Notes: a model not told the origin generated them from the sequence alone. DNA of 64,000 bases from Zygnema circumcarinatum SAG 698-1b (GCA_037447605.1 CM074817.1:1178001-1242000); one strand, 5' to 3'; positions 8,348 to 63,686 are shown, counted from the first letter of the stretch. Made by a program: numbers and translations.

Positions 8348-8440
8348 GTGGCATTGATCTCACGATGGAGATGCCATCGAATGTACATGGACAAGAGCGA
8401 CATGGGGAACCACGAGGAACCGCTCAGAGAGGACCTAGGG
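8348..8440 (+). mobile_element. ~130-bp dispersed element, copy A (3'-degenerate)
   Basis: GTGGCATTGATCTCACGATGGAGATGCCATCGAATGTACATGGACAAGAGCGACATGGGGAACCACGAGGAACC matches seven other loci in the window. Confidence 0.75.
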
Positions 8441-8968
8441 ACCTTTTCCTCCCCCCGCTTCTCGCCTCTACTTTCTCTCTCCACACAGACCGCCTCAATG
8501 CTGCCCACGTCGCCGTCAAAACGAAACCTTACCATATATACCATACAAAATCATATGTATATAGAGAAAATAAGAGAATTGCCATTCAATCCCATGTAAT
8601 AACCACACCATTCCATAGCAACTTCTATAAGAATTTCCAAAATTAGAACACTCCAGTCATTTTCTAACGAATTGTTTCCGAATTTACGAAATTACTGCGA
8701 GTTATGAAATTCATGAGCCCAAAAACAAGAAATAACAACTCCAACTCCCGAAACCAGTAATGGCTCGTCGATGTATGTGTGAGTATGACATGACCCCCAA
8801 AGCTTCAGGATTCAATTCGAAAGCAGTACTTTCAGGTTTCACATCTCCCACTGATATCACATGTGTAATTTACTGGTCTCGAATACTGTTTCCTTTCTGG
8901 ACCTGGTGAAGGATTGACATGCCCATCTGACCTTCTGCTCCGCCATTGGACCTCGTCCCTTCGCCGCC

Positions 8969-11900
8969 ATGGATACTTCAGCGAAGGAAGGCCATGGCGG
9001 CCGGCGGCTGCCGAAGGGCGCGCTGGCATCCATTGCTCTCTTGTACATTATCAGCGCTTTGTCGGAAACCGTTCTCTTTCCTTTCGTGGCGTTGATGGTC
9101 AAAGGCTTTCACATCACGGAGGATCCGCTGAAATTAGGGTGAGGATGCTTGGAGGTGGAGTAGAATTGCTGGTAGGATTTGGTTTAGGGTTAAGTGTGGG
9201 GGAGGACTGGGACTAGGCTTGAAATTACGGTTATATAGGGTTATGGTTAGGGTTAGATTAGGGTTAGGGTTAGGGTTAGGGCAGGGTTGGGGTTAGGGTT
9301 AGAGTTAGGATCAGTTTAGGGTTAGGGTTAGGATCAGTATTAATACTTGCATTCATAATTAGGGTTAGGGTTAGTTAGGTTAGCGTGAAGGTAAGAATAA
9401 AGGCTTAAAGCAAAAGAGAGAGAGTTTAGGGAAGACCTAGTTTCAATTTTCTGTACAATTAATGTCACCAAATCCTTCACTCGAAGAGATATGACTGCGT
9501 ATGTCTCAAATATCTGCCTTTGGCTGTCACTGCAATTTTGGTGCCTGCAGCCTGTTTCCAGGCTATATGCGATCATGTCAATCAATAACCTCTTGAGTAC
9601 AGAGCACATTTCCATGATGGCACACTGTGAAAGCCTATGTTTTTGGTTTCTCATGGTTGTTCAGTCGTATGTGCGCCTCACACAAGCTTTCTTCCTTGCA
9701 TGGATCCAGCTATTATGCCGGATATGTTGCAAGTTCGTTTTACGTTGGCGTTTTGCTGTCGTCAGGCTTTTGGGGGTAAGCAGTTCTCTACCTAAATGTC
9801 TAAGCTCGTCGTTTTCACTCTATTATTATGTTTGGCATTCTGCAGCTCGTTGACTTATGGTACAACGTCTTCAAATGAAGTGAACTCAAGTCTTGAATTT
9901 CAGCTATTTCGTCCATATGAATTGTGACTGGGTTTCATTACTTGGCTCAAACGGACCTTTTTTTTTGTTTTTTCTTAAGTTCTCTGTCCGACTGGATAGG
10001 CCGCAAGCCGGTGCTCCTTTTCAGTACCGTCACAACAGCTGCCACGTCACTCACCTTTGGCTTCAGCTCCTCACTCTCGACAGCCATGGCTGCTCGCTTC
10101 TGCAGCGGACTCTTGAGTGGAGTATATCCTGTTGGCAAGACGTAAGCTCTTCCGTGCTATCTCTAATGAACAGTTTGAAAGGAACAAATTCCTACTGGAG
10201 TAGGAACTGCTTTTTTCAAGTAGTCCGAGTCAAATAGACGGAGGTGAGACAAAGGGATTTTGAAACGTGGTTTGACGATAAGCAACGAGGTCGATGTGTC
10301 TATATGATAGCATTTACTTTGTTGCTTGCTTTGTAGCTCAGTAAAGGTTCTCATACAACTTGTCGGAGGGTGCCATGGCGGCCTGCAGATTGATAGCAGA
10401 GCTGACTGATAACAGCAACCAAGCATCTGGGTAGGGCTTCCACCCTAGTCCTCCCAGAATGACTTTCAATTCACAAACTGTCGTCTGTCAAGTTGGATCT
10501 CTTGTGTTTTGAGGCTTCTCTTCTGCTTGTTTTTGCTTGTTCTTTGCAGCTACACTGTGATTGGCCTCAGTTGGGGTGTCGGTCTGCTCTTGGGNNNNNN
10601 NNNNCCCCCCAAATTGTTCTCTTTGAAACCCCAAGTAGATCACAGATACATACCTCCACTTTAGTAGCTCTTTGCGGTGTACTCGAAGGATATCAGATTG
10701 TTCAAGTCAACAGCCCCAACTTATGCTTATTGTGTCTGATCATCAAGATTGTGCATTCCATGCTGTTTCCTACAGGTCCTGCGTTGGGAGGGCTGTTCTC
10801 ACAGCCGGCAGAAAAGTACCCCTGGTTGATACCCCAGGGCAGCCTTCTTGATATTTTCCCCTTCGCCCTCCCCTGCATTTTTATCAGTTCCCTTGCCGTT
10901 GTTAGCCTCGGCCTCCACTACTTTTCTCTGCCCGAAACTTTGGGCAGGGCCAAAACTGCTTACAATTTTAGACCAACTGCTATGGAGATTTCCACTGAAG
11001 CCGGCAGCAGCAAAGACGGAGCGAGTGGCAGCAAAATTTGCTGCTCCAATCAGGATTTGACATCTGGCAGCTCCTTTCTCCCAAAAGGAACGTTGCTGTC
11101 CCATGTGACAACGGAGCCTCGGCTCCGTGAGCCGTTGATTTTGAAGGAAAATTCGGAAACTGAGATGGGAAGCATAGGCAAGGGAGGGAAAGGATGGGCC
11201 GTGAGAAGGTGGTTGGCCTCCATTTGTGGGTGGGAGGATGAGGAAAAATATACAGTAGAGTGGAGGGGTGATGAGAAAGCAGGATGGGTGAGAGCTGTCT
11301 TTTGCGAACGGGATACCGGTGAGTGTCTACTGTTTATTAGGGTGGCTTTTGAGGGCTCAGATTTTGCTCAATGAAACTGTTCTCAGGAGCATTCTATCCA
11401 AAGTTTCTACCTTAACTTTGAAGTGATTCTGAAGGGAAGGTTGTTGTTGCTCCTGCTGACTGACATGTGGTGTGTATACGTGCAGTGCTGACGACGCTGA
11501 TTTATGCGGTCTTGGGATTTGCTGCCACTTCGCAGAATGAGGTGATTTCTCAACTAAGAAAGTATCTAGTGAATGTTTAAAGTCTGGACTTTCGCCATAT
11601 CAAATGCTCTGTATGAATGCTGATTACTCCTGCCGCTCGTTTGTCGTAAGAGACTTCCATGTCTCCTTTATGCTTGAGACAATTAGTTTCAGGTTTGCTG
11701 TAACTTTACGGAAGAGCAGAATATTGCTGTGTTTTCTAAGGCAACTCAGACAAGGGAGTAACTACATTTTAATCAGCTTTAGATGTCAGCGTAGCAATTT
11801 TGTAGGCATCGTGGTTTTTTGCATGCCCAGACGCCAGACTGCACATGTGGCACTGGAAAGATGAACCTATCAAAGAAATGAAATGGCTCAAAGTGGAAAC

Positions 11901-13607: not shown

Positions 13608-16600
13608 CTATCCCTCCTGAGACAAAGCTATCAAATTGAACTGACAAGAAGTGGGATCCCTCTCCATGAATCCCCGCACTACTTTCACAGTTGCCTGCAA
13701 ACCCCCAAAAGAGCACAACCCAGTTTTGAGCATATTGAGAGATCGATTGCATTTGGCTAACCTTCATTCAAAAGAAGTGTCCAGTTGATTGGGCTCAGAG
13801 AGGACAACTCAATCCAAGGAAATAAACAACAAGGAAAACAGACAACTGGAAAAGTATGGCAGCAAAGATGGAAACAAATGTTGGTGATGACCTATATGGC
13901 CTGTTGTAAAGGCGAAATAAAGAGCCAAAAACTGACCGGTAGTAAATCGTCTGCACTCGCGGGGCCGTGATAAATGGGAAACGGCTTTGAGCCGTCCAAT
14001 TCGTACAAGCCACCTGTCGGCCAATTATACAATAGGTAACTCAATATATTTTGCCCAAAATTTACTTCAGACCCACACTAATGCCAAAAGGAATCAAAAA
14101 CGAATGAACAATTTAATTTCTTATACAGTATGCATGCAATGGGACAGTCTGACTCCTGCTGATTATGCCAGAAAATCCAAAACCTACAAACAAGGGTTAG
14201 GCTTAGGGTTAGGGTAGGGTTAGGGTTAGAGTTGAAGTCAGCCACAAGTGTGGAGGACGAACTGGCTTACCGTCAACACTCACAAACGCGATGAAGTGGA
14301 GGTCGACCGGTTCTGTTATTTCAGGCGCCTGTGAAGCATAAAAGCAGAGAAAAACATTGCTCATTCAGTCATAGTCAAAGTCAAAGTTACAGAAAAACGA
14401 TGATGATTCACATAATGGGAATCATTATCTTCAGTCTCCCTTCCTTATCAACCTTGTCTGACTTCAGTTTCCTTTCCCACATGGAAACAAAAAGCCTCTC
14501 ATGAGTAGGATGCTGGTTGTCCTTTTCCAAAGTGGCAGAGCACTATTTAACCTATTCCTATATTTATGGGAGGTTTAAACTTTCGAGTACTAAGTTTATA
14601 AGTTATGAGAGGTAGAAAAGTACCGCCGTGTCTCCCGCTGATGCTGCAACTGAATGAGCTTCTTCCATTTCCGTATCCTCCTCCAAAAATTGTGCCCGCT
14701 ACAATCAATTAACAAATAGCAAACGTCATGTCTACGAAGTCTGACAGAGGCACACAAATAGTAAGGGACGAACAGCAAAAACCAAACTAGAAACAAACAG
14801 TAAGCGACTTTAGAGTCTTCTTTTATATGATTTTGGAACCTGGCAAATTCTTCAGATGGATCGTGTCGGAGAAGCAACGAGACCGCTTTAAAAGTTGGAT
14901 ACTATCATGACTTTTTGTTTGTTTTTTAATACCCCACAGAGACTCTATCCCAAGCAATTCTCCTCACCTCAGCTGGACTCATGCTTTTGGTCTTCTCAAA
15001 AAATCTTTTGAGGTAGGAGCCCTCCGCTGCATTCAGGTAAAATAGTGGCACAATGCTCACAGTTAAAAGCGTTTGAATGCAAAGTAGATGATAAAGGAGT
15101 ATCCTTGTCATTTTCCAAGACAGAAAACTTGGCCGCATTGTCATACATACATGCACATCTCTCTCCCTCTCTCTCTTCAACGTGCCATGCTCACCTAGAT
15201 TGAGGCGCTGAGTGTTGTTCCCAATAGCATGCAGAAGGCCCACAGTTCCACAAGCATTGCCAACCGTCTGTAGAGTGAACCACACTTCACTGCTCACCTG
15301 CAGCTTCAAAACAAATTGTGAGGCTTTAGGCTCTATGTGGACCATACCTGGCATTGAGCATATTCAGTAGAAACTTCCATTAATGCTCACACAGTTCTTT
15401 GAAAACAGGGAAAATAAAATGCAATGCTTCAGCTTTCAGCATCATGGTCCTTAGATCACGCTTCCTTAAATGTTCATTACGAATGAAGAAGTCTCTTGGG
15501 GGGAAGGTGTTCTAGCGTGTCTTGTCATTTCAGTAGAAATATTCATGAAACAGACGTCCAAGAAGGAACTGTTTCTTATGATATTTTCCATGTCTACGCT
15601 TCAATGCTCATTGCCGCTTGAAACCCAAACCCGATCTTACTTCCTTCGATAGAGTTAACCATCTCGCGCCAGCTGTCACTCCCTCTCCTCTCTCCTCTTC
15701 CAAAACGACATGGCAACACGCTAGTCTATTCAATATGAACGCTATTTTATTCGATATGAAGGTGAACAAAGTAGCAATGAGTATCATACCGTCTGCCCTT
15801 CTTTCTCGACTCGTTGCACTTCTGCCTTCTTAGCTGCTACAGCCTGCATCATCGAAGTTTTCAACATGAAAAAGTGAATCGGTTACTGTCAAAGCAGGTT
15901 TCCAGCCAGGGTCACCTCAAAACATTGCATCTTCTGAAAGAACTGCTGAAAATCGAAAAACAAAGAAGCTTCAGGTTAATTCTTCTAAAATGTAATTTAC
16001 GATAATCTCCAATATTGTAGAAATGAACACACTCCTGCATACATTTGTCAGTGCATGCTAGTACAACACCTGTGATGCTCTATTCTGGCATTATCCTCAA
16101 ACGTCATACATTGAAAATGAGTTTGAATATTACAAGAAAGCAGCCTTAAAGCCTTCCAGCCTTCCTACTTCCACTCCTCGTAAGGTGAAGCCGAACTTAC
16201 CGCCTCATTGTCAGGAAAGAGAAGGAGCAGCGCCAGCACAGGCTGCGGGACCATGGAAAGCAGCTCTTCATCGAGACCGTACACGTCATAGAATCCAGCT
16301 GTCTCTGGAAGCCCTAAAGGGCGCACGAACTGCAGCTCCAGGGAGGAAGTGGAGAGGAAAGGAGTGATGAAATGAGAGGAGGCAGAAGATGAGAGAGATG
16401 AGGAGGCAGAAGAAGCAAGGTGGAAGAAGGCGGGGTGGGGAAGGAGAATTGGTGTGGATGGCAGGCGAGGAGAGAACAAGAGGGAGTTGGAGGGAAGGAG
16501 GAGAGGGAGGGAAAGGAGGAGGGAGAGAGGGATGGGAGGGAGGGAGGAAAGGGAGGGTGGAGAGGGCAGGAAGCGTGGGGAGGGAGGGGAAGGGGAAGAC

Positions 16601-24204: not shown

Positions 24205-26135
24205 TTAATTTATCCAACCTGTGCCTTCATTCTGATTTCTCTCCACTATCACCTCCTCTATGATTGTCACTAGCGTCACCATGAGAGCTGTATCCACCTG
24301 CATTTTCAATTCATGCCAGCACCATTGTAGCACAGAGTTAAGACGGAGGTACTGGTCACAAAGGAGGGCAAGCAAAACGGGCACCAACTTGTTTCCCAAG
24401 ACAAACAAGGCATGTTGTTACTTCTGAAAGGAAACGTGTCAACAGCTCTTATTTGAGTACAACCTGATAGGAATGCAGACATCATAAAGTGTAAGTTGAT
24501 GTTTCTGAGCATGGTCCAGCACATACCCCTGGGAATATTCGGAGGTAGTATGTGTCCTTTCCCAAGTAAGCTGCACGAGCAGAGAACATGTCGCGGCTAA
24601 CCTCAGCCAATAAGCGTCCTTCAGAATTCGAAATCTGTCCATAAACAACAAACGATAGTGCAGGTCAGACCATCTCCATCTAAGCTACTGTCTTTGTGAA
24701 GGATGAATGAACAGGACATAAAGTTCAAAGTTTGTAACTGGAACAGTCTTTTCAACAGGCTACACTTCAAACGCTAAGATGTTACGTAGAAAACGAACCT
24801 GAAAGTTCCTTTCGCCAAAGGTTCCTCGAATCAAGATGTCAGGATTTGAGGACTTGTTTCCTCGGAAGAAGACCTGCAGCAAAATCCATATGTTTTCCAT
24901 GCTACAATGAAATAAAACCTCTTTCGTTGCCAACGACAACGAGCACAAATATCAGACGCTTCAATTGAAAGGCCTTAATCAATTAGTCTCTCTCTTCTGA
25001 AAAAAAAGGAAATGCAGTTGACGGCTCCGAGGATTGCGTCTGCTGCAATGCAGCGAAAATTCTTCTTCTGCTCCATTCCTAAAAACATTTCCTTTCGAAG
25101 CCCCGCAAAAAGTTTGGAAACTTACATGGGCCTGTGGAGTAAGGGAGAAGACCACTTTGCGAAGCTCGGCAATTTTAGCAGACTCTTGTGGGTTCGCTCC
25201 TGGACAGATATATGTTACAGCCTTGAGACTCATCACCTTCTGCATGGTGCTGGAAACTGCGTTGCCAGCATTATCATATATTGCTCGCCTTTTATGCATG
25301 CTCACAATCCTGCAGCACCGCAAGAAAAATGGTTTAAGGGACTTTCAGAGAAGCAAAGATTGCTGAAACGACCGGCAGAAAAAAAAAAAATATATATATA
25401 TATATATATTCTTTTCAGGGACATAAACGCATGGCCCGCACAGAACAAGGGAAGCCTGACGTAAAAGGAGTGAGCCATCAAGCCATCCATTCACCGAGAA
25501 AAATAAATTGATGCCTTGCAGTGAATAGAACGCTGAATGGCCTTCCGATACAAAATGACAGCAGCCTTAGAAAGATAGCAAGTAAGAACAGCCAATATGA
25601 AGACTACTCACTTTGCTCGTAGTCTGAATTGAAGGGCGCCTGTGACGTCCGTGATGTCCATGTCATCTCGTGACCAGCTCTGAATCTCTCGCAGAACAAG
25701 AGTGGTCTCATATGGCAAAATGAACTGCGGTCCAAACAAACTCACTATGGGCTCTACCTGTGCAGGAGGGGCAACAGGGCCAGCAGGAGCCGCACCCGGA
25801 ATCGCTGTGTGGGACCTACCGCTACTGCTCCCTGCCTGGTAACTGCCACTATGGCTTTTCAGAGAATAGTCTCCAGCAGATGGTCCAGGAGGGTGAGGGT
25901 ATCCAGGAGGAGGCGCGCCATAGGTAGAGGGATGAGTTTGAGGAGGGTAGCCTGGAGCCTGAGGGTAGCCATGGCCACCTTGAGGCGGGTATCCAGAAGG
26001 AGGGTATCCAGGAGGTGGGTATCCAGGAGGCGGGTATCCAGGAGGCGGGTATCCAGAAGGAGCGTATCCAGAAGGAGGATAGCCTTGGTCGGGAGGGTAG
26101 CCAGGATAGCCCCCTGCAGGAGGATAATAAGACAT
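24205..26135 (-). CDS. LURP-one/Tubby-C-like (Tub_2) domain protein with N-terminal GYPP-repeat region
   Basis: MSYYPP..(GYPPP)n; LFGPQFILPYETTLVLRE..DMDITDVTGALQFRLRAK; IVSMHKRRAIYDNAGNAV; VFFRGNKSSNPDILIRGTFGERNFQ; GRLLAEVSRD..GKDTYYLRIFPG; VDTALMVTLVTIIEE..*. All exons join in frame. Confidence 0.85.
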
Positions 26136-26234
26136 GGCCTGGCCTGCAACGCTCTGAACGCTCCTTGAGCCTCCTTCTCCTCCAAAGCAGCCTCCCTACC
26201 TGCCTGCCTGTCTGCTTGCCTGCCTGTAAGTTTG

Positions 26235-26270
<36 letters not shown>

Positions 26271-26623
26271 CCCGCCTGCCTGCCTGCCTGCCTGTGAGCC
26301 TGCCTGCCTGCAGAACGCCTTCCAACAAATTAATACCACAAGGAAAGCAATGCAAATGTCACTGTTGTTGTCCTCCTCAACCTCCTTGCTCGTGAGTAAC
26401 ACGGAAATGGCGGGCAACGCGGAGAGCTGCACTGGGCGGACGGTATGAAGCCGGCACGACTAATTCTGAGTGCAGCCTTCAAACGCGGTCAAAGCGCGCG
26501 GACCAGAGAGAGGGCGCTGGCGCTTCCGGAGGAGGAGGGCCGATATTATCGCCGCAATACTCCTGGCGACATAGTATGGAATAATTTTCTATTACGAATA
26601 AATTTCAATTTTAGAGGCTTTTT

Positions 26624-28620: not shown

Positions 28621-30563
28621 TTAATTCAACCAACCTGTGCCTTCATTCTGATTTCACTCCACCATCACCTCCTCTATGATTGTCGCTAGCGTCACCACGA
28701 GAGCTGTATCCACCTGCATTTTCAATTTATGCCACACCATTGTAGCACAGAGTTAAAACGGAGGTGCTGGTCACAAAGGGCAAGCAAAACAGGCACCAAC
28801 TTGTTTCCCAAAACAAACAAGTCATGCTGTTAGTTCTGAAAGGAAACGTGTCAACAGCCTTTTCGTCGAGTACAAACTGATGTGAATGCAGACATAACTT
28901 ACACTTTATATATATATATATATAAATATATAAAGTGTAAATTGATATTTCTGAGCGTGGTCCGACACCTACCCCTGGGAATATTCGGAGGTAGTATGTG
29001 TCCTTTCCCGATTGAACTGCAGAGGAAATGCCGCGAGTAACCCTCGCCAATAAGCGATCGTCAGAAGTCGAAATCTGTTCAGAAACAACAAACGATAGTG
29101 CAGGTCAGATCAACTCCATCTGAGCTACTGTTTTGTGAAGGATCAATGCACAAGGCATTAAGCTCAAAGTTTATAACTGGAACAGTCGTTTCAACAGACT
29201 GCACTTCAAACGCTAAGATGTTAGGCAGAAAACGAACCTCAAATTCTCTTTCGCCAAAGGTTCCTCGAATCAAGATGTCATGATTTGAGGACTTGTTTCC
29301 TCGGATGAAAACCTGCAGCAAAATCCAAATGTTTTCCATGCTAAATTAAAACCCCTTTCGTTGCCAAACTACAACGAGCACAAATATCAGACGCTTCAAT
29401 TGAAAGCCTTTAATCAATTAGTCTCTCTCTCCTGACAAAAATGGAAAAGCAGTTGACGGCTCCGAAGATTGCGTCTGCTGTTATGCAGCTAAAATTCTTC
29501 TTCTGCCCGTTCCTAGAAACATTTCCTCTCGAAGCCCCGCAAGAAGTTTGGAAACTTACATGGGCCAGTGGAGTACCGCCGGAGAAGACCACTTTGCGAA
29601 GTTCGGCAATTTTAGCAGACTCTTGTGGGTTCGCTCCTGGACAGATATATGTTACAGCCTTGAGACTCATCACCTTCTGCATGGTGCTGGAAACTGCGTT
29701 GCCAGCATTATCATATATTGCTCGCCTTTTATGCATGCTCTTAATGCTGCAGCACCGCAAGAAAAAGGTTATTGTGTTGAAGGGTCTTCCAGAGAAGCAA
29801 CGATTGCTCTAACAACAGGAAAAAAAAAGAAAATTATTCTTTTCAGGGACATAAACGCATGGCCTGCACATAACAAGGGAAGTCTGACGTAAAAGCAGTG
29901 AGTCAGCGAGGCATCCATTCACCGAAAAAAAGGATTGAAGCCTTTGCAGTGAATAGAACGCTGAATGGCCTTCCCATACAAACTAACAGCAGCCTTAGAA
30001 AGATAGCAAGTAAGTACAGCCAATACGAAGACTACTCACTTTGATCGTAGTCTGAAATGAGGGGCGCCTGTAATGTCCGTGATGTCCATGTCAACCTTTG
30101 TCGAGTTCTCAATCTCTCGCAGAACAAGAGTAGTCTCATATAGCAAAACGAACTGCGGTCCGAACAAACTCACTATGGGCTCTACCTGTGCAGGAGGGGC
30201 AACAGGGCCAACAGGAGCCGCACCCGGAATCGCTGTGTGAGACCTACCGCTACTGCTCCCTGCCTGGTAACTGCCACTATGGCTTTTCAGATAATAGTCT
30301 CCAGCAGATGGTCCAGGAGGATGAGGGTATCCAGGAGGAGGCGCGCCATAGGTAGAGGGATGAGTTTGAGGAGGGTAGCCTGGAGCCTGAGGGTAGCCAT
30401 GGCCACCTTGAGGCGGGTATCCAGAAGGAGGGTATCCAGGAGGCGGGTATCCAGGAAGTGGGTACCCAGGAGGCGGGTATCCAGGAAGAGGTTACCCAGA
30501 AGGAGGATAGCCTTGGCTGGGAGGGTAGAAAGTATAGCCCCCTGCAGGAGGATGATAAGACAT
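28621..30563 (-). pseudogene. LURP-one paralogue with nonsense mutations
   Basis: ATG at 30563, in-frame TAA at 30494-30492 (GGG TAA where the repeat has GGG TAC/TAT), and GAG TGA in the last exon where copy 1 has GAG AGA. Exon structure otherwise retained. Confidence 0.82.
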
Positions 30564-30925
30564 GGCCTGGCCTGCAATGCTCTGAGCGATCCTTGAGCCT
30601 CCTCCTCCTCCAAAGCAGCCTGCAAGCCTGCCTGCCTGCCTGCCTGCTTGCCTGCTTGCCTACTGCTGACCTGGTCGCGTGATTTCCACGGAGGGTCGCA
30701 ACGCGGCGAGCTGCCATTGGGTGGACGGGATTCAGCTGTCGCGTCAAACGCGGTCAAAGCGCGCGGACCAGTGGGAGGGGCCGAGGCTTCCGGAGGGGCG
30801 GGAAAAGTGGGCGGGAGGGGGGTGGTGCCCATATTATCGCTGCGATACGGTAGGATACTGGACCGTGCTGCTTAGTTAGTGAAAAAAAGAGTTTAAATAA
30901 AATTTAAAGCAATACCCTGTCATCC

Positions 30926-30998
30926 GGGGATGTAGCTCACATGGTAGAGCGCTCGCTTAGCATGCGAGAGGTACGGGGATCGATACCCCGCATCTCCA
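30926..30998 (+). tRNA. tRNA-Ala(AGC)
   Basis: GGGGATGTAGCTCACATGGTAGAGCGCTCGCTTAGCATGCGAGAGGTACGGGGATCGATACCCCGCATCTCCA; 73 nt cloverleaf, G3:U70, anticodon loop TTAGCAT. Confidence 0.97.
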
Positions 30999-45435: not shown

Positions 45436-46380
45436 ACGATACTATGCTCGATACCGATAATATATCGTGGACGATACACTATGCTACTGGCGATACTATA
45501 TCGTCAACAATATTATGACGTCTACGATATTACACCGTGGGCGATACTTGCATGCGATATTGTATCGCTGACGATAGTATATCGCAAACAATACTGACTC
45601 GCAAAAGATAATGTATCGCACGCGTTTCTGTATCGCAAGCGATATTATATCTCAAACGATACTGTCTTACAAACGAGACTGTATCGTAGTATTGTATCAC
45701 AAACGATATTGTATCGCAAACGCTATTCTGACATAGACGATATTGTCTCTCAAACAAGAGTGCATCGCAGGCGATATCGTATCGCAAATGAGATTGTATC
45801 GCAGACTTATATTGTTCGTAAACGATGGTGTATCGCAAAATATATTGTGTCTCAGGCGATATTGTATCTCATACGATATTATATCGCAAACGATACGATT
45901 TCGATTTACGATTTACGATTTATACTGTAAATCTGACTATGCTGTATCGCAAACAATATTATATTGCAGACGATAATATATCGTAGACGACATTGTATCG
46001 CAAACGGTATTGTATTGCAAACGCTATTGTATCGTATACGCTATTGTATCTCAGACGATATTGTATTGAAAACGATATTGTATTGCTGACTATGCTGTAT
46101 CGCAAACGATACTGTATCGCAAACGATACTGTATCGCAAACGGCATTGCCACGATATTGTATCGCAAATGGTATTGTATTGCAAACGATATTGTATCAAT
46201 TGAGATTGTATCGCAGACGACATCGTATCGCCAACGCTAGCATATCGCAAATAATACTGTATCGCATGCAATAGTGTATCGATCCAACAATGTATCGGTG
46301 GCGATAAAAAAAGCGATATTGTACCTCGAGCGATACTGTATCGCAAACGATATTGTACTGTACACGATATTGTATCTCGA
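45436..46380 (+). repeat. Degenerate 17-bp minisatellite array, consensus ACGATATTGTATCGCAA (about 55 units by length)
   Basis: Recurrent CGATA-TTG-TATCG palindromic core, e.g. CAAACGATATTGTATCGCAAACG. Confidence 0.92.
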
Positions 46381-47039
46381 GAAGAGAGAAAAGGCATTTT
46401 CAAATTGTTCGACACTGGTCATGAAATGGCGCAAAAACGCCAAAAAAAATACAGAAAGATGAGGACGACGACGATGGCCTTGCAGCTAAAGCGACTTTCA
46501 GCCAAGTTTCTCAACTGACGAAGGAGAGACTCAATTACAACTGACCTTGAATAAAACTAAAACTAAAACTACACAATGGACTGAACAAAAAAAAAACGCA
46601 ACGACCATGAACTCTGCTGGACAACGAAGAGCAAAAAGTTGCTCTAAATAGTCACTCTTCACAAATCATTATTATTCAGCTTCAGTCTAAATTTCCCTTA
46701 ACCTGATCTGAACTGAACTGAAATAGAAAATGAAGCTGAATAACGAATGTGGAATGAAATAAAAAAGCAGCACTCATGATGTTGCTGACGACCCTGCAAC
46801 GTTCAGCAAGTAGACGACTTGCTCCGCCTCCCTTTCTCCGCTTATTCCACTCTCACTGTACAAAAAACGAACTGAACTGAGCCCCGATGTTGGGCCCGGA
46901 ACCAATCTGACGAGCAGGGACCACCGCCTTCCATGCCCCCCTGCGTCCCCTCCCTTCTTTTTTCCCACCCTTCCCCCCTCCCTTCCTCCCTCCCTCCTTC
47001 CCCTCCCTCCCGAGAGGCAAGCGGGCCTAGACTGGAGGC

Positions 47040-49050: not shown

Positions 49051-49628
49051 ACAATAATATTGAATCGAATCGAACGCAATAATATTGAATCGAACTGAGT
49101 ACGATAATATTGAGCTGAACTGAGCACGATAGTATTGAATCGAACTGAGCGCAAAAATACTGAGTTGAACTGAGCACGATAATATTGAATTGAGCAGAGA
49201 ACGATAACATTGAATCGAACCGAGCACAATAATATTTAATTGAACCGAGCACAATAATATTGACTTGAAGTGAGCACGATAATATTGAATCGAACCGAGC
49301 ACGATAATATTGAATTGAACTGAGCACGATAATATTGAATCGAAATGACCACAATAATATTGAATCGAACTGTGCACGATATTACTGATTCGAACCGAGC
49401 ACGATAGTATTGAATTGAACTGAGAAGATAATATTGAATTGAAGCGAGCACGATAGTATTGATTGAACTGAGAACGATAATATTGAACTGAACTTAGCAC
49501 GATAATATTGAATTGAACCGAGCACGATAGTATTGAGTCGAACCGAGCGTGATATTATTGAATCGAACCGAGCACAATGGTATTGACTTGAACTGGGCAC
49601 GATAGTATCGAATCGAACCAAGCGTGAC
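49051..49628 (+). repeat. 25-bp minisatellite array, consensus GCACGATAATATTGAATCGAACCGA (about 23 units)
   Basis: Regular 25-bp period, e.g. GAGCACGATAATATTGAATCGAACCGAGCACGATAATATTGAATTGAAC. Confidence 0.95.
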
Positions 49629-56158: not shown

Positions 56159-57644
56159 CTAACCGGTCAGTTCTGTGCCTCAGAGTTCTAATGTGTGAAA
56201 TTTCCCCTGTATGAAATCTACCCATTTGCTCGTCCTTACCATATTGGAACAGAAGGTTTGACCTCTGCTCGTTCTATGTTCTCCTCAGCTTGTTCATCGA
56301 CTTCATTTTTTAGGCTAGTAGGATCATACGAAGAACAATAACATGGGGGACAGATTCGTCACTAGTATTTCAGATTCTATAGTTTGTTCCGGCGTTTGGC
56401 ACGGCATAAGTGCTCTGATATTGCTCAGTTGACTCGCACGGATCCAAACAGTTTAACGTTTTTTTGGCGGGTCTTCGGTTGAACAGAAACCGTGAAGGAA
56501 CGTCACGACATGAACAGTGAAAATAGAGAGCACTAAGGGCACCACCGAGGTCATCTCAGCTGCTTTCCTTCACCAAGCAGTGTAGAAATACATGGTGCTT
56601 ACATTGTTCTATTGTTCCGGCATTGTAGCGGAGGATGGCAGAGGTCCATAAAGTCATTGGTCATTAGGTCGCTAGGTCATTAATCAGATCAATTAGGTCA
56701 ATCTTTGCGAACAGATTCATGGTATGCATGCCCCCCTCCCTTGCATGGCAAAAGCCATCAAAAGGTGTAAAGCGAAAGGGAATCACCTTTTCTGGGAGCT
56801 GAGTGCCTGAACAAGGATAGGCTCATGGTGTGCAGTAGAAAGTGTACGGTACGGAGCATTACATGGAGCGACTGGCATGCCTTGTTGTGCGCAATGCTTC
56901 ATACAGGCACAGCGAACGGGGGTTCTCTCACACGGTTTCTGTCAGCCCTGACAATCAGTTTTGGCCACTGCGCAAGCAAGACTGCTAAATAAGAGACCAA
57001 AAGGAAATGGACCACCCCTCCCCCTTCCCCCACAGACACGTCTTAACCCGAAGTAACCAGATACTGACTTGCAGCTGATCAAATAACTCTAGAAAAAACT
57101 TAAGGAAATCACCAAAAGCCCGAAAAGCCGATTTTGACTATTTGATTTTCACTCGGGTGTTTAGAAACTTCGCGGCTATGGGCAGTTGCAAAAAGAAAAG
57201 TCGAAAACTGGAAATGCTGAAGTGCCTACAACACGGTCAATACTTATCCTTATGTTATTGCATTGCGTTGTACAATTGCAACATATTGGTTGGTGGATGG
57301 TTCACATGACGTGAACCATTCCATAATTTCCTCACCCTTGATCAGTTAGTTTTCCCACATGCCGCTATACAATCTGCCAAAAATCTAACCAGATACATCA
57401 TTCATTTTTTTTGTTGGGATGCAATCCGGCAACCGTAGGCAATGGTTGTGTCGGTCGGGCGGCGATGGTTCCAACCATTGGCAATTGCTGTTCCGGACCG
57501 GCTTGCCGAGACAAGCAGTCCGCCAAGGCATCACCTTGTGACGTCAGCCATGAACAGCTCAAGAACAATGTCCACATTATTGGTCACACCATCGATGTTG
57601 ATGTTTGACCATTTCCAAAAATGAAAGAAAAGAGTAAAATGTGT

Positions 57645-57751
57645 GGGTGCGACACCGGGACTTCCCGGGAGGTCACCCATCCCAGTACTATTCCGGCCCA
57701 CAGGCGCTCAGCTGCAGGTTCTGATGGGATCCGGCGTAGTAGCCTAGGTAT
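57645..57751 (-). rRNA. 5S rRNA gene copy lacking the first ~9 nt (probable pseudogene)
   Basis: Reverse complement: ATACCTAGGCTACTACGCCGGATCCCATCAGAACCTGCAGCTGAGCGCCTGTGGGCCGGAATAGTACTGGGATGGGTGACCTCCCGGGAAGTCCCGGTGTCGCACCC, followed by T-rich sequence. Confidence 0.88.
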
Positions 57752-58539
57752 ACGGACGTCCAAGTGTCAGACCTTGTTCTTTTTTTATTTTTCGTTTCTC
57801 CTTTCGAGGGAAGACATCGGACGCCTCCTTTCGGCAATCGTTGTTTGGGACCGGCGGCAATGGTTGGGAACCAGTGGCAATGGTTGTTTCGGTCCCGTCG
57901 CAATCCCAATCGCAATCCCGTTGCAACCCTTGGAATTCAATGGTTGCAACCATTGGCAATGGTTTTCAATGTTGCCAACCAAACCATTGCCACCGGCCCT
58001 AAACAACGATCGCCAATGGTTGGCAACCTTGGAATTGAAGGGCCGGCGGCAATGGTTGCCAATTGAAAACCATTGCCAATGGTTGCAACCGTACCGCAGG
58101 CAATGGTATGGTTGGAACCATTGGCAATCGTTGTTTTGTTTTGTCCCGTCGCAATGGTTGGCGACCTTGGAATGCAGTGGTTGCAACGATGGGCAATGGT
58201 TTTCAACGTTGCCAACCATTGCCGCCAGCCCTAGACAACTGTTGCCAATGGTTGGCAATCTTGGAATTCAAGGGCCGGCGATGGCAATGGTTGTTTGGGA
58301 CCGGCGGCAAACATTGAAAACCAGTGGCAATGGTTGTTTCGGTCCCGTCGCAATCCCAATCGCAATCCCGTTGGCAACCCTTGGAATTCAATGGTTGCAA
58401 CCATTGGCAATGGTTTTCAATGTTTGCCGCCGGCCCTAAACAACGATTGCCGAAAGGAGGCGTCCGATGTTCTTCCCTCGAAAGGAGAAACGAAAAAGAA
58501 AAAACGAACAAATCCTGACACTTGGACGTCCGTACACGT

Positions 58540-58651
58540 GGTGCGATCATACCTAGGCCACTACGCCGGATCCCATCAGAACTCCGCAGCTAAGCGCCTC
58601 CGGTATAGTACTGGGATGGGTGACCTCCCGGGAAGTCCCGGTGTCGCACCC
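58540..58651 (+). rRNA. 5S rRNA gene copy with an internal deletion of ~6 nt (probable pseudogene)
   Basis: GGTGCGATCATACCTAGGCCACTACGCCGGATCCCATCAGAACTCCGCAGCTAAGCGCCT-CCGGTATAGTACTGGGATGGGTGACCTCCCGGGAAGTCCCGGTGTCGCACCC. Conserved 5S blocks CCGGATCCCATCAGAACTCCGCAG and AGTACT.GGATGGGTGACC; downstream TTTT runs. Confidence 0.9.
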
Positions 58652-58833
58652 GCCCATTTTACTCTTTTCTTTCATTTTTGGAAATGGTCAAACATCAACA
58701 TCGATGGTGTGACCAACAATGTGGACATTGTTCTTGAGCTGTTTCTGGCTGACGTCACAAGGTGACGCCTTGGCGGACTTCTTGTCTCGGCAAGCCGGTC
58801 TGCCAAAATTCCCAAAGTACCCGCTGCCTTTTT

Positions 58834-58930
58834 GGTCTCACGATGGCGATGCCACCAAGGCTGTTCATGGGACGGCAAGCAACGCGGGGAACCACGAGGA
58901 ACCAGCCGCTCAGAAAGAGGGCCCAAGGAC
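58834..58930 (+). mobile_element. ~130-bp dispersed element, copy F (diverged), between the foldback and tRNA-Ala
   Basis: GGTCTCACGATGGCGATGCCACC..GCGGGGAACCACGAGGAACCAG. Confidence 0.7.
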
Positions 58931-58969: not shown

Positions 58970-59042
58970 TGGAGACGCGGGGTATCGATCCCCGTACCTC
59001 TCGCATGCGAAGCGAGCGCTCTACCATGTGAGCTACACCCCC
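58970..59042 (-). tRNA. tRNA-Ala(CGC)
   Basis: GGGGGTGTAGCTCACATGGTAGAGCGCTCGCTTCGCATGCGAGAGGTACGGGGATCGATACCCCGCGTCTCCA; anticodon loop TTCGCAT, G3:U70. Confidence 0.93.
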
Positions 59043-59275: not shown

Positions 59276-62200
59276 ATGGCGTCTGCCAGCAAGCGGAGGC
59301 GAAAGGACGAAGCCCCTGGCATTGCGGCAGGGAGCAACGATGGCGGGCGTGCTTTCTACAGAGAGCAGCTGTCTGAGGAGGGCTTGCGGAGCGGCGCTAC
59401 TCAAATTCAGAACGTTTTTAACAAAGTATTTTTTCTCCTCATAGACACTTTGCGGTTTGAATGCTGAACATAGCCCATTTACTGTGCAAGATCGTTCAAC
59501 ATGCGCAGGGAATAAACATGTTGCAAGGTGATGAAACGGCTAGCTTTTCGTGTGTATTATTGAAGGAATTCAGTTGTCGTCGAAGCTTATCCTGCTCAGA
59601 TTCGCTGGTTAGGGAGGCCTTCCATGGTGCTCGACTGAGCGCCTTCCACTTTACGATTGTTTCTTTGTGGGTGGAGATTGGAGAAAACTCTCTTTTGGAA
59701 AGGAGAATAGTTTCTTGTGTGTGGTTTTAGCCATTTTGAGATGTATTGTTGGTACCAGATAACCACGAAGCGCTCCTGGTCGTTCCGTACAAAAATGTCG
59801 CTCCCTTCTCCCCCCTCCCCTCCCCCCTTCCCTCCCTCCATTTTTTTTTTTTCATTGCCATGGAAGTACATTAGCTCTCCTGTGACTCACCTGGTTACCT
59901 AAGTCTGAGTCACCTCTTGAATGCGAGTCACTCCCGACGCCTTATGCTTAATGTACAGCTCTAGACCTGAACCTTAGGACTTTAAACACTAGGAACTACT
60001 TTCATACGATTTATTTTTGCTACTCTTAGTAATGCAATTTACGGGACGTCAGCTTTTTCATCCCTTTAGGTGGCCCCTCTGTCAAAGTTCTCCAGCCATT
60101 CTCCATACGAGTGGGTGCCGTTAATTATGCGTGGAGGTTACTCCCAAGCCACCTCTACACAGTGAGATCAAGTGCAAGACAGCGGTTTGAAAAGCTGGTC
60201 ATAACTGTTTGCTCTAACACTTATTCCTCTTTATCTCATTTCTGCTCTCCTGCAGGATGGAGGGTTTCAAAGTACCCAGAGTTTAGCGTCAGGAGAAAGT
60301 GGAGGCGATGTAGTGGCTTGTAAGCCTCAAGGTTCTATGTTTGGGAACTTCAAGGAGTCCGATTCCCCACTATCACTAAGAGCAGATACAGAACCCAATA
60401 GCGTTCCACAAAATGGTAATGGAGGACCTCAGCATTGGCCTTCAACCACTCCCATTTCTTCCCCGACGGCGCGAACAGCAGCAGTCATTATGTTGAATAA
60501 AGGGCCAACTGATGGGCCATCCCTGTCACGCGCTGAAGAGGATGGTGGTAGTGAAAGGGAGTTGCAATCAGGGAATGTCGCGGATAACAGAACTGTTTTT
60601 GAGGATTTAGGAAACGGGCATCAGAGGGAAGGGGATGCACAGGGTCTTGAAAAAGAAGCCCGTAGAAATAGTGAGGCTGGAATGTCTAGGGGATTCGGTG
60701 GATGGGTGAATGGGAGAAGATGGGATTCGTCGGATGAAGTCAAGAATGAAGCTAGTCATCATTCGCGTGACCAGGGGTATACCTATGATCAAAGTCCTCA
60801 AGGGGGGAATGGTGGATTGCGAAGTGAAAGGTGGGTTCAGGAAGATAACAGTCCTCATAAAGCAGCGAATGGTGGATTTAGTTTCAGGATTCCAGAAGGC
60901 AACCAGAACTTGCAAAACTTGCTTGGTAAGCGAGACACAGCGTCCGAGCGAACTCCACAAGGTACGGAGAGGAATCTGGAAGAGCAATTGAGAAAGACAG
61001 AGATAGAGTCGGATGGGAGAGGCGATGCTTGGGGGGGGGGGAAATAAATAGCATAAAGGGGAGGGGAGATGAGCTGTCTCTCGGAAAAATGGAGGGAAAA
61101 GATGCTTCCATGCAAAGAATGAGTCACTACTACCAAGTGAGAACGCGAATTGCAGTTCTATTCATTCTGCAGAGCAAATTGTGAGCGCTGCTGCTGCTGA
61201 GTTGACAGCTCGGATGGTTTCTATTGCGGGAGCTGAAGTGGTCTCCTGGGGGCGAGTGGCTGCAGCTTTAGGGGCATCTCCCCACCAATGGCCCTTCCAT
61301 CCTGCTAGCCAGAACACAATGTCTGCTGCAGAATCGAGCTCAATGCCTCACCCAGAAGTTGCAACTACAGTGCAGCAGCAGCAGCAGCCATTGCCAGCCG
61401 GGTCCTTCCCTAGCTACCCTCCTCCTGCAGCTTTCCTTGGTCCCAAATGCGCATTGTGGGACTGCTTGAGGCCGGCTCAAGGGGACTACTGCAGTGAGCT
61501 GCATGCAGCCATGGCTGCCACAGAAGGGGGGAATGGGAGGGCCCCTGTGGTCAGACCATGGGGGATTGAGCTCAAGGACCCTCTTTTGCTTGCTGCACTC
61601 CGAGCGAGGATTGCAGGAAAGGCAGTGGGAATTCCTGATTGTGAGAAGGCAGCTACGGCAAAAAGTCCATGGGGGGCACCAGGTAAGCCAAACGCTGATC
61701 CTTTTCAATGGAAGTTATGAATTGGGTTCCAAAAGTCTCCATTTCTGTGTTCATATGGCAGTAAATGGCATTTAATTTGACAGATATAAGGGAAAGGAAC
61801 TCCCTTTCCCTGTCTCGGTCTGCCTAGTTTCACCACCTGCAATTCTAGGGAACTTGGAAAATGTCTTTAATATGCTTGACCTGCCCTGAAGGATTGTTGT
61901 CACTTTCACTCAAGTAATGGGGAGAAGAATGTGAGTCGTAACTGTTCTGTGGAACCCCTTCAAGTCTTCCTCCTTCCAGATCACATAAAGTAACCAAGCC
62001 TCTGTCGCATGCACTCTACCTAATTCGTTGTAAAAACTCCAACCTCTGATATGTTCCCCAACTACTGATTTCCACCATACAAACTTCTTTCAAGGCATAC
62101 ATACCTCTCAGCCTGCTCCCTTTCTCCACTTCCACACTCCACTTAGCACCAAAACTTTCCCTATCAAAAAAGCGGTTGCAAAGCGTATTCCTCCCCCTCT

Positions 62201-62787
62201 GTGATGGACTACTACTTCCTATGTGAGCAGAGCTTTTCGATGTCAACATGTTGGTGGGTGAACCTCTCCGTGAGTGGCTCTTTTTCGACAAGTCTCAACC
62301 TGCGTACGGAACAGGCACTAGGAAGCAGCGCGCTCTGCCTGACTACAGCGGGAGATGGCACGACTCCTACAAGCAGCACTTCAAGGACCATGGCGGATTA
62401 AAGAGAATTTTGTACCTTGACCCGCAGCCGTCCGGCAATGTGGAGTGGCATCTCTATGAGTACGAGCTCAAGGGCTCGTCAGAGTGGGCGCTGTATCGTT
62501 TGGAGATGAAGAAACGCGATCCAACCAAAGCGGTAAGCACTGAATCAGGGACTCAAAAACGGGTTGCAGAAAGGGTGCCTGAATTAGGGTTTCGGACTCA
62601 CGTTGGTTCTGCAGGAAGTTTTAGCTTGTGTGGTTATAGACAGTGACATGTGATCTGAAACCTGCCGTGTGGTTTCTTATGTCCTTTTTGATGCAATTCT
62701 TGGCAGGTGAATAGTGTACTTATTCAGTCGTCACAAAGAGGAGGCCATAAGTCTGCTTTCACAGTCGTGAAGCCAAGACCACTATGA
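59276..62787 (+). CDS. VOZ: VOZ (one-zinc-finger, NAC-like) transcription factor homologue
   Basis: [29 protein letters not shown]; [17 protein letters not shown]; [23 protein letters not shown]; LREWLFFDK; [12 protein letters not shown]; [13 protein letters not shown]; EWHLYEYE; ALYRLEMK. Exons 59276-59425, 60256-60961, 61173-61682, ~62230-62532, 62708-62787 join in frame. Confidence 0.9.
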
Positions 62788-63410: not shown

Positions 63411-63515
63411 GCTTAGGTTTTTTGCGCCCAGTCCCTCGTGGTTCCCCATGCTGCTTTTGTCCATGTACATTTGATGGCATCGCCATCGTGAGATCAATGG
63501 CCACATCCCTTTTCT
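63411..63515 (-). mobile_element. ~130-bp dispersed element, copy G
   Basis: GCTTAGG..CAGTCCCTCGTGGTTCCCCATGCTGCTTTTGTCCATGTACATTTGATGGCATCGCCATCGTGAGATCAATGGCCAC. Confidence 0.82.
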
Positions 63516-63649
63516 TTTTCCGCTCTTAGCTTTTTTCTTTTGTGCTTAGGTCCTTTGCGACCAGTCCCTCGTGGTTCCACGTGTTGCTTTTGTCCATGTA
63601 CATTTTTGATGGCCTCGCCATGCGTGAGATCAATGCCATTTTCTTGTTC

Positions 63650-63650: not shown

Positions 63651-63686
<36 letters not shown>

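Follow-up and report, generated by a model that had tools for sequence, protein, structure and literature searches.

Two mirror-image, probably defunct 5S rRNA copies around a dyad-symmetric spacer repeat in Zygnema circumcarinatum: a likely local inverted duplication

The window analysed here is a stretch of 64,000 nucleotides from Zygnema circumcarinatum SAG 698-1b (GCA_037447605.1 CM074817.1:1178001-1242000), and all positions are counted from its first letter. It contains a small 5S island (~57441-58800) in which two copies of a 5S rRNA sequence face away from each other across a short tandem repeat. A permissive Rfam search (E<=1) returned exactly two matches to the 5S model RF00001 in the 64 kb, one on the minus strand at 57646-57757 (59.6 bits, E 5.6e-10) and one on the plus strand at 58539-58652 (73.3 bits, E 1.4e-13), both of them above the gathering score of 38. 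Both copies are of the plant type. Read along the DNA, the island consists of a fragment of a spacer repeat unit, an inverted 5S cassette, three repeat units (A, B and C) and a second 5S cassette.

The two cassettes form the arms of an inverted repeat. The left arm (57496-57846, minus strand) comprises the inverted cassette together with ~14 nt from the end of a repeat unit, and the right arm (58438-58800, plus strand) carries the cassette in the same orientation as the repeat array. Each arm contains ~87 nt of upstream sequence, the 5S sequence, three T-runs, ~148 nt of downstream sequence and ~14 nt of the adjoining repeat. When the right arm is reverse-complemented and aligned to the left one, 330 of 346 positions are identical (95.4%), and the arms are distinguished by 16 substituted positions and four indels of 1 to 15 nt. 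The repeat search recovered the arms as a 201-nt inverted block at 96% identity with contiguous blocks. The T-runs on the 3' side of the right 5S (TTTT, TTTT and TTTTT) lie at 58657-58679 and are mirrored on the left. The original prediction, which had been made from the sequence by inspection and had described two inverted arms with outward-pointing 5S genes and T-rich, terminator-like runs, was thus accurate in these points of anatomy. Folded as single-stranded DNA, the whole region is predicted to form a long hairpin (-594 kcal/mol), and a BLAST search of the other 62 kb of the window revealed no second copy of the arms or of the core between them. Both arms also carry two perfect palindromes with an ACGT core, namely TGACGTCA (57541-57548 and 58748-58755), which is located ~100 nt downstream of the 5S, and GGACGTCC (57759-57766 and 58525-58532), which is located ~10-17 nt upstream of the 5S +1. 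These palindromes might be factor-binding sites.

The arms are separated by a spacer of ~590 nt, equivalent to 2.8 copies of a ~220-bp unit that is repeated head to tail on the plus strand. Unit A (57833-58049) measures 217 nt and unit B (58050-58282) 233 nt, and unit C (58283-58451) is cut off by the start of the right cassette at unit position ~169. Pairwise identity is 95% for A and C, 85% for A and B and 81% for B and C. Outside the left arm (57441-57495), a further unit is represented in the same orientation by its first ~55-60 nt, with 74-77% identity to the starts of A and C. Every one of the three units has an inverted repeat of its own of 36-54 nt, situated at 57833-57868 and 57979-58014 in A (86%), at ~58039-58090 and 58179-58232 in B, and at 58283-58336 and 58398-58451 in C (91%). 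The self-complementarity scores of the units exceeded those of all 200 shuffles; unit B, for example, reached a score of 35 against its own reverse complement, with a shuffle maximum of 20.

According to the original prediction, the spacer was made up of CAATGGTTG/CAACCATTG repeats at the centre of a palindromic layout, a description that applies in part. The exact motifs are indeed confined to this region, with all 16 sites of the 64-kb window falling within 57440-58406 (expectation 0.76 sites; maximum of 4 in 100 shuffles), but in addition to the core they occur outside the left arm, where CAATGGTTG and CAACCATTG are found at 57440 and 57472. The palindromic layout, likewise, holds for the arms but not for the core, which is a directional tandem array. 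When up to one mismatch is allowed, the 9-mer occurs in plus orientation at 20 sites and in minus orientation at 10, which gives the core a polarity. The full 1.3 kb aligns to its own reverse complement at 78% (BLAST), but the core part does so at only 63-67% and with many gaps. As the direct relations among the units (81-95%) are much stronger than this, a palindrome over the whole length was rejected, and the 78% alignment is attributable to the dyad symmetry of each unit. A literature word search for the 9-mer CAATGGTTG returned unrelated papers or primers only. At 57303-57330, ~110 nt to the left of the island, lies a short hairpin-forming sequence (GGTTCAC..GTGAACC with CCATT-like flanks) that resembles the spacer motif.

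A functional 5S rRNA gene has five intact helices, a length of ~118-121 nt and an internal control region of normal spacing. Both copies at this locus depart from this configuration, the left one through a reduced helix I and the right one through a loss in helix V. In the left 5S, 15 nt that are present at the 5' end of the right copy are missing, which removes the 5' strand of helix I, together with a single nucleotide further inside; in the RF00001 alignment this copy shows gaps and non-canonical pairs in helix I, most of which is gone. The right 5S (58540-58652) lacks 5 nt that the left arm has in the 5' strand of helix V, and its RF00001 alignment shows a 5-nt gap there and, on either side of the helix, four broken pairs. 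Helix I is required for a stable, assembly-competent 5S rRNA, and the region of helix V coincides in part with the intermediate element, a component of the internal promoter to which TFIIIA binds. Because of these losses, both copies are likely pseudogenes, neither of which would be expected to produce a working 5S rRNA. We judge the missing nucleotides to be deletions by reference to the other arm, the Rfam model and a plant primer sequence. The first 14 nt of the right 5S equal the start of this plant 5S primer, 5SgF (PMC3692318), which indicates that the 5' end is canonical on the right and truncated on the left. The box C region and the T-run terminators are retained in both copies. Between the arms, 5 of 103 positions are substituted within the 5S sequence and 13 of 257 in the flanks, and three of the four indels fall within the 5S. 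The 5S sequences have therefore diverged as fast as their flanks, which speaks against purifying selection, and against gene conversion, after the deletions had arisen.

To locate the inner junction, we aligned the inner end of the left arm to three other sequences, namely the corresponding right-arm end in reverse complement and the first parts of units B and C. The left arm tracks the right-arm reverse complement to ~57846 and then the start of unit C, which it matches exactly beyond 57886, and the three-way alignment brackets the switch point between 57846 and 57861. This interval lies inside 28 nt that are common to the start of the unit and to the reverse complement of unit positions 142-169. 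The change from right-arm to unit-C sequence therefore occurred within the unit's own 28-nt inverted repeat, or in other words, the inversion junction coincides with an existing short inverted repeat. At the outer junction on the left, the three-way alignment shows repeat-unit sequence to 57495 and arm sequence from 57496. The outer flank of the right arm (58801-58831) is not repeat-like and consists of unique DNA. Microhomology at the outer junction amounts to 1 nt in one register and to 8-9 nt in another, an ambiguity that stems from the nearly palindromic nature of the unit and from its direct subrepeats. No target-site duplication was found when the sequence within +/-6 nt of either arm end was searched for direct repeats 4-10 nt long, the only repeat encountered being an arm-internal CCGG.

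In the vicinity of the island, a tRNA-Ala(CGC) gene is encoded on the minus strand at 58970-59042 (ARAGORN; RF00005, 53 bits), 170 nt beyond the right arm and outside the palindrome. Between the right arm and this gene sits one copy (58832-58930) of a dispersed repeat of ~100 nt, which is found three more times in the window, at 8354-8442 (+), 63431-63497 (-) and 63564-63633 (-). Its conserved core contains CTCACGATGGCGATGCCATC and GGGGAACCACGAGGAAC, and it may be a short non-coding element or a fragment of one. Further to the right, at 61181-62646, there is a pair of exons which we take to be VOZ-like, the second of them having a weak NAM-domain match, and a ubiquitin-activating E1 gene is located at ~37.8-39.7 kb. 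The window also contains repeats of other kinds. Interstitial telomere-like repeats are present as TTAGGG-type runs at 9225-9338 and 14193-14233 and as a short CCCTAAA-type run at 1810-1838. Two minisatellites were recorded, one at 45555-46381 with a 17-nt unit in ~44 copies that contains the palindrome GATACTGTATC, and one at 49054-49623 with a 25-nt unit in ~23 copies. A pair of tandem repeats, in which a 15-nt GAGGAGGGTATCCAG array is followed ~100 nt later by a GCCT microsatellite, occurs twice (25982-26311 and 30410-30661) at a distance of 4.4 kb, the second pair lying just upstream of a tRNA-Ala(AGC) at 30926; this duplication suggests a segmental duplication or a repeated element. Unknown bases at 63590-63605 (X in the ORF translations) in a long C/G homopolymer at ~63651-63686 suggest an assembly gap or a masked stretch.

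We posit that the locus originated as a local inverted duplication, by fold-back or template switching, of a single 5S cassette in a palindrome-rich spacer, that both cassettes now hold pseudogenes, and that it is not a mobile element. We assign this reading a probability of about 0.6. The starting arrangement would have been that of the present right side, namely a short array of the ~220-bp dyad-symmetric repeat, followed by one 5S cassette and then by unique DNA. Upon a break or a stalled fork within the repeat array, a 3' end with unit positions 1-28 would have folded back and paired with the complementary stretch (positions 142-169) of a unit further downstream on its own strand. From there, the cassette would have been copied in reverse, and the new copy would have been joined, with little or no homology, to the second broken end, which lay inside another unit. 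Afterwards, the two cassettes would have drifted ~5% apart, each 5S gaining its own disabling deletion. On this path, the left cassette, which lies inside the array, is presumably the derived copy and the right one, at the array edge, the ancestral copy. The inclusion in the arms of ~87 nt upstream of +1 and of ~148 nt past the first T-run indicates that the cassette was copied from DNA and not from a Pol III transcript.

Two observations fit the fold-back reading less well. Classical hairpin-primed palindromes have short loops, which the ~590-nt spacer with its 2.8 units exceeds in size, and the identity of units A and C (95%) matches that of the arms. The equal divergence of the A-C pair and of the arms would be in line with a single event that duplicated unit and cassette together, and such an event would fit as well as fold-back synthesis; so would an inversion inside a former head-to-tail 5S array of two units.

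A broader reading, which we consider possible but doubtful, is that the locus belongs to a dispersed and perhaps mobile family built from a 5S cassette and the dyad-symmetric 220-bp repeat, either foldback- or MITE-like or spread via excised circles, and that the palindrome is a property of this element and not a local accident. The inverted repeats of 36-54 nt give the 220-bp unit MITE-like termini, and large 5S palindromes have been proposed to seed new loci via extrachromosomal copies in pike (PMC5437419). Against this reading stand the absence of a target-site duplication at the arm ends, the unique sequence of the arms, the internal and directional position of the subrepeats, and the lack of any further copy in the window. 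Metagenome contigs scanned for exact patterns from the arm and from the core also gave no match, nor did a search in protein space with a 272-aa ORF that runs across the locus and that we take to be spurious. With similar reserve, it may be speculated that 5S genes are organized here not in one long array or in the 35S unit but in many small islands, each composed of a ~340-bp 5S cassette and the dyad-symmetric ~220-bp repeat. Its inverted repeats might flip and copy the cassette and perhaps seed it elsewhere, which would amount to a palindrome-driven, semi-mobile organization with the present locus as a decayed example.

The classes of mobile element compared here do not fit the locus. The original prediction had offered, as one of two readings, a new 5S-bearing family of foldback (FB-type) transposons, and the island does share with these elements the long inverted arms, the internal short repeats and the folding into a long hairpin. 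However, the arms of FB-type transposons are composed of subrepeats and have conserved termini flanked by a target-site duplication, whereas here the arms are unique 5S cassettes without subrepeats, the subrepeats form a one-way array in the centre, and no duplication flanks the structure. The arm ends correspond to the internal inverted repeat of the spacer unit and not to the termini of an element. A foldback transposon was therefore rejected for this locus, also in view of the missing second copy in the window. A retroposed 5S of the SINE or Cassandra kind was rejected because the arms hold promoter-side and post-terminator DNA. 5S-derived SINEs start at the 5S +1 and close with a tail, as a retroposed transcript would, whereas the identity between the arms extends over the upstream and the post-terminator sequence described above. 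Together with Cassandra TRIMs, these SINEs (SINE3) share with the present locus the occurrence of 5S-related sequence outside a normal 5S array. Cassandra carries its 5S in direct LTRs (10.1101/2023.07.14.548913). In a TRIM of this kind, the LTRs enclose a primer-binding site and a polypurine tract; here, in contrast, the two 5S copies lie on opposite strands and enclose a tandem array of the 220-bp repeat.

It is improbable that the two copies represent a working divergent 5S pair which shares an upstream control region of CAATGGTTG repeats and is maintained as a unit by selection or by gene conversion. In favour of such a pair, both copies score above the Rfam threshold and retain the box C region and the T-run terminators, the repeats are located upstream of both genes, and a Pol III-transcribed tRNA gene is present 170 nt away. 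Yet the left copy is without the 5' strand of helix I and the right copy without 5 nt of helix V in the region of the intermediate element, the 5S has diverged at the pace of its flanks, and a repeat array of one orientation faces the two genes differently. The deletions, moreover, differ between the arms, which implies that no conversion has taken place since they arose. As an alternative to the transposon, the original prediction had suggested an unusual dispersed palindromic 5S unit maintained by arm-to-arm gene conversion. The unusual dispersed palindromic unit stands, whereas conversion is contradicted by an arm difference of 4.6% with four arm-specific indels, by the separate disabling deletions and by a 5S that is no better conserved than its surroundings.

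An assembly artefact, in which a fold-back chimeric read of the kind known to yield palindromes of this size from long-read data created a false palindrome, is excluded in practice, since such a chimera should have near-identical arms about a sharp centre, whereas the arms are set apart by 16 substitutions and four indels (1 to 15 nt), as already argued in the original prediction, the 590-nt spacer array is directional, and the outer flanks are unlike in kind.

As a single locus, the pseudogene pair should be of little consequence for ribosome supply. Its value lies in a cleanly readable junction, at which a spacer repeat with built-in inverted repeats appears to have turned and duplicated a 5S cassette. 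If the same junction logic held at other inverted 5S pairs, it would explain scattered, mirror-paired 5S sequences in a lineage where linkage to 35S rDNA is taken as ancestral, and it would connect palindrome-rich spacers with replication errors and with the dispersal of 5S in a way that can be tested. For streptophyte algae, literature word searches retrieved no account of nuclear 5S genes that are palindromic or dispersed. The linkage of 5S to 35S rDNA is, in a passage of PMC3692318 citing Wicke et al. 2011, the observed state in these algae and is taken as ancestral.

Among known systems, inverted duplications seeded by short inverted repeats share with the locus an inverted copy made at the DNA level and an inner junction in a short (here 28-nt) inverted repeat, as well as a non-palindromic spacer, little homology at the other junction and the absence of a target-site duplication. 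That short inverted repeats can give rise to inverted amplification during replication is an established model (ODIRA, PMC4689423). In contrast to ODIRA, which predicts an inverted triplication, the present structure is a duplication with a long (~590 nt) spacer made of a tandem array, and its proposed mechanism is derived from the junctions only. In the 5S rDNA of pike (Esox), inverted 5S blocks were found in long reads, and the authors associate them with errors in replication and with the spreading of 5S (PMC5437419). Both cases have 5S units in opposite orientations at one locus, but the pike blocks are kilobases of tandem, potentially functional genes, whereas in Zygnema each arm holds one damaged cassette and the pair is situated among protein-coding genes. 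An S-type tandem 5S rDNA array differs in its head-to-tail arrangement, as the 64 kb contain two copies only and these are inverted. With dispersed 5S pseudogenes or orphons, the two copies have in common their isolation, their disabling deletions and the neutral rate of their flanks; they differ from them in forming a mirror-image pair that is embedded in a specific, dyad-symmetric spacer repeat. The structure is best read as a variant of two known phenomena, the dispersed 5S pseudogene and the inverted duplication that arises at short inverted repeats.
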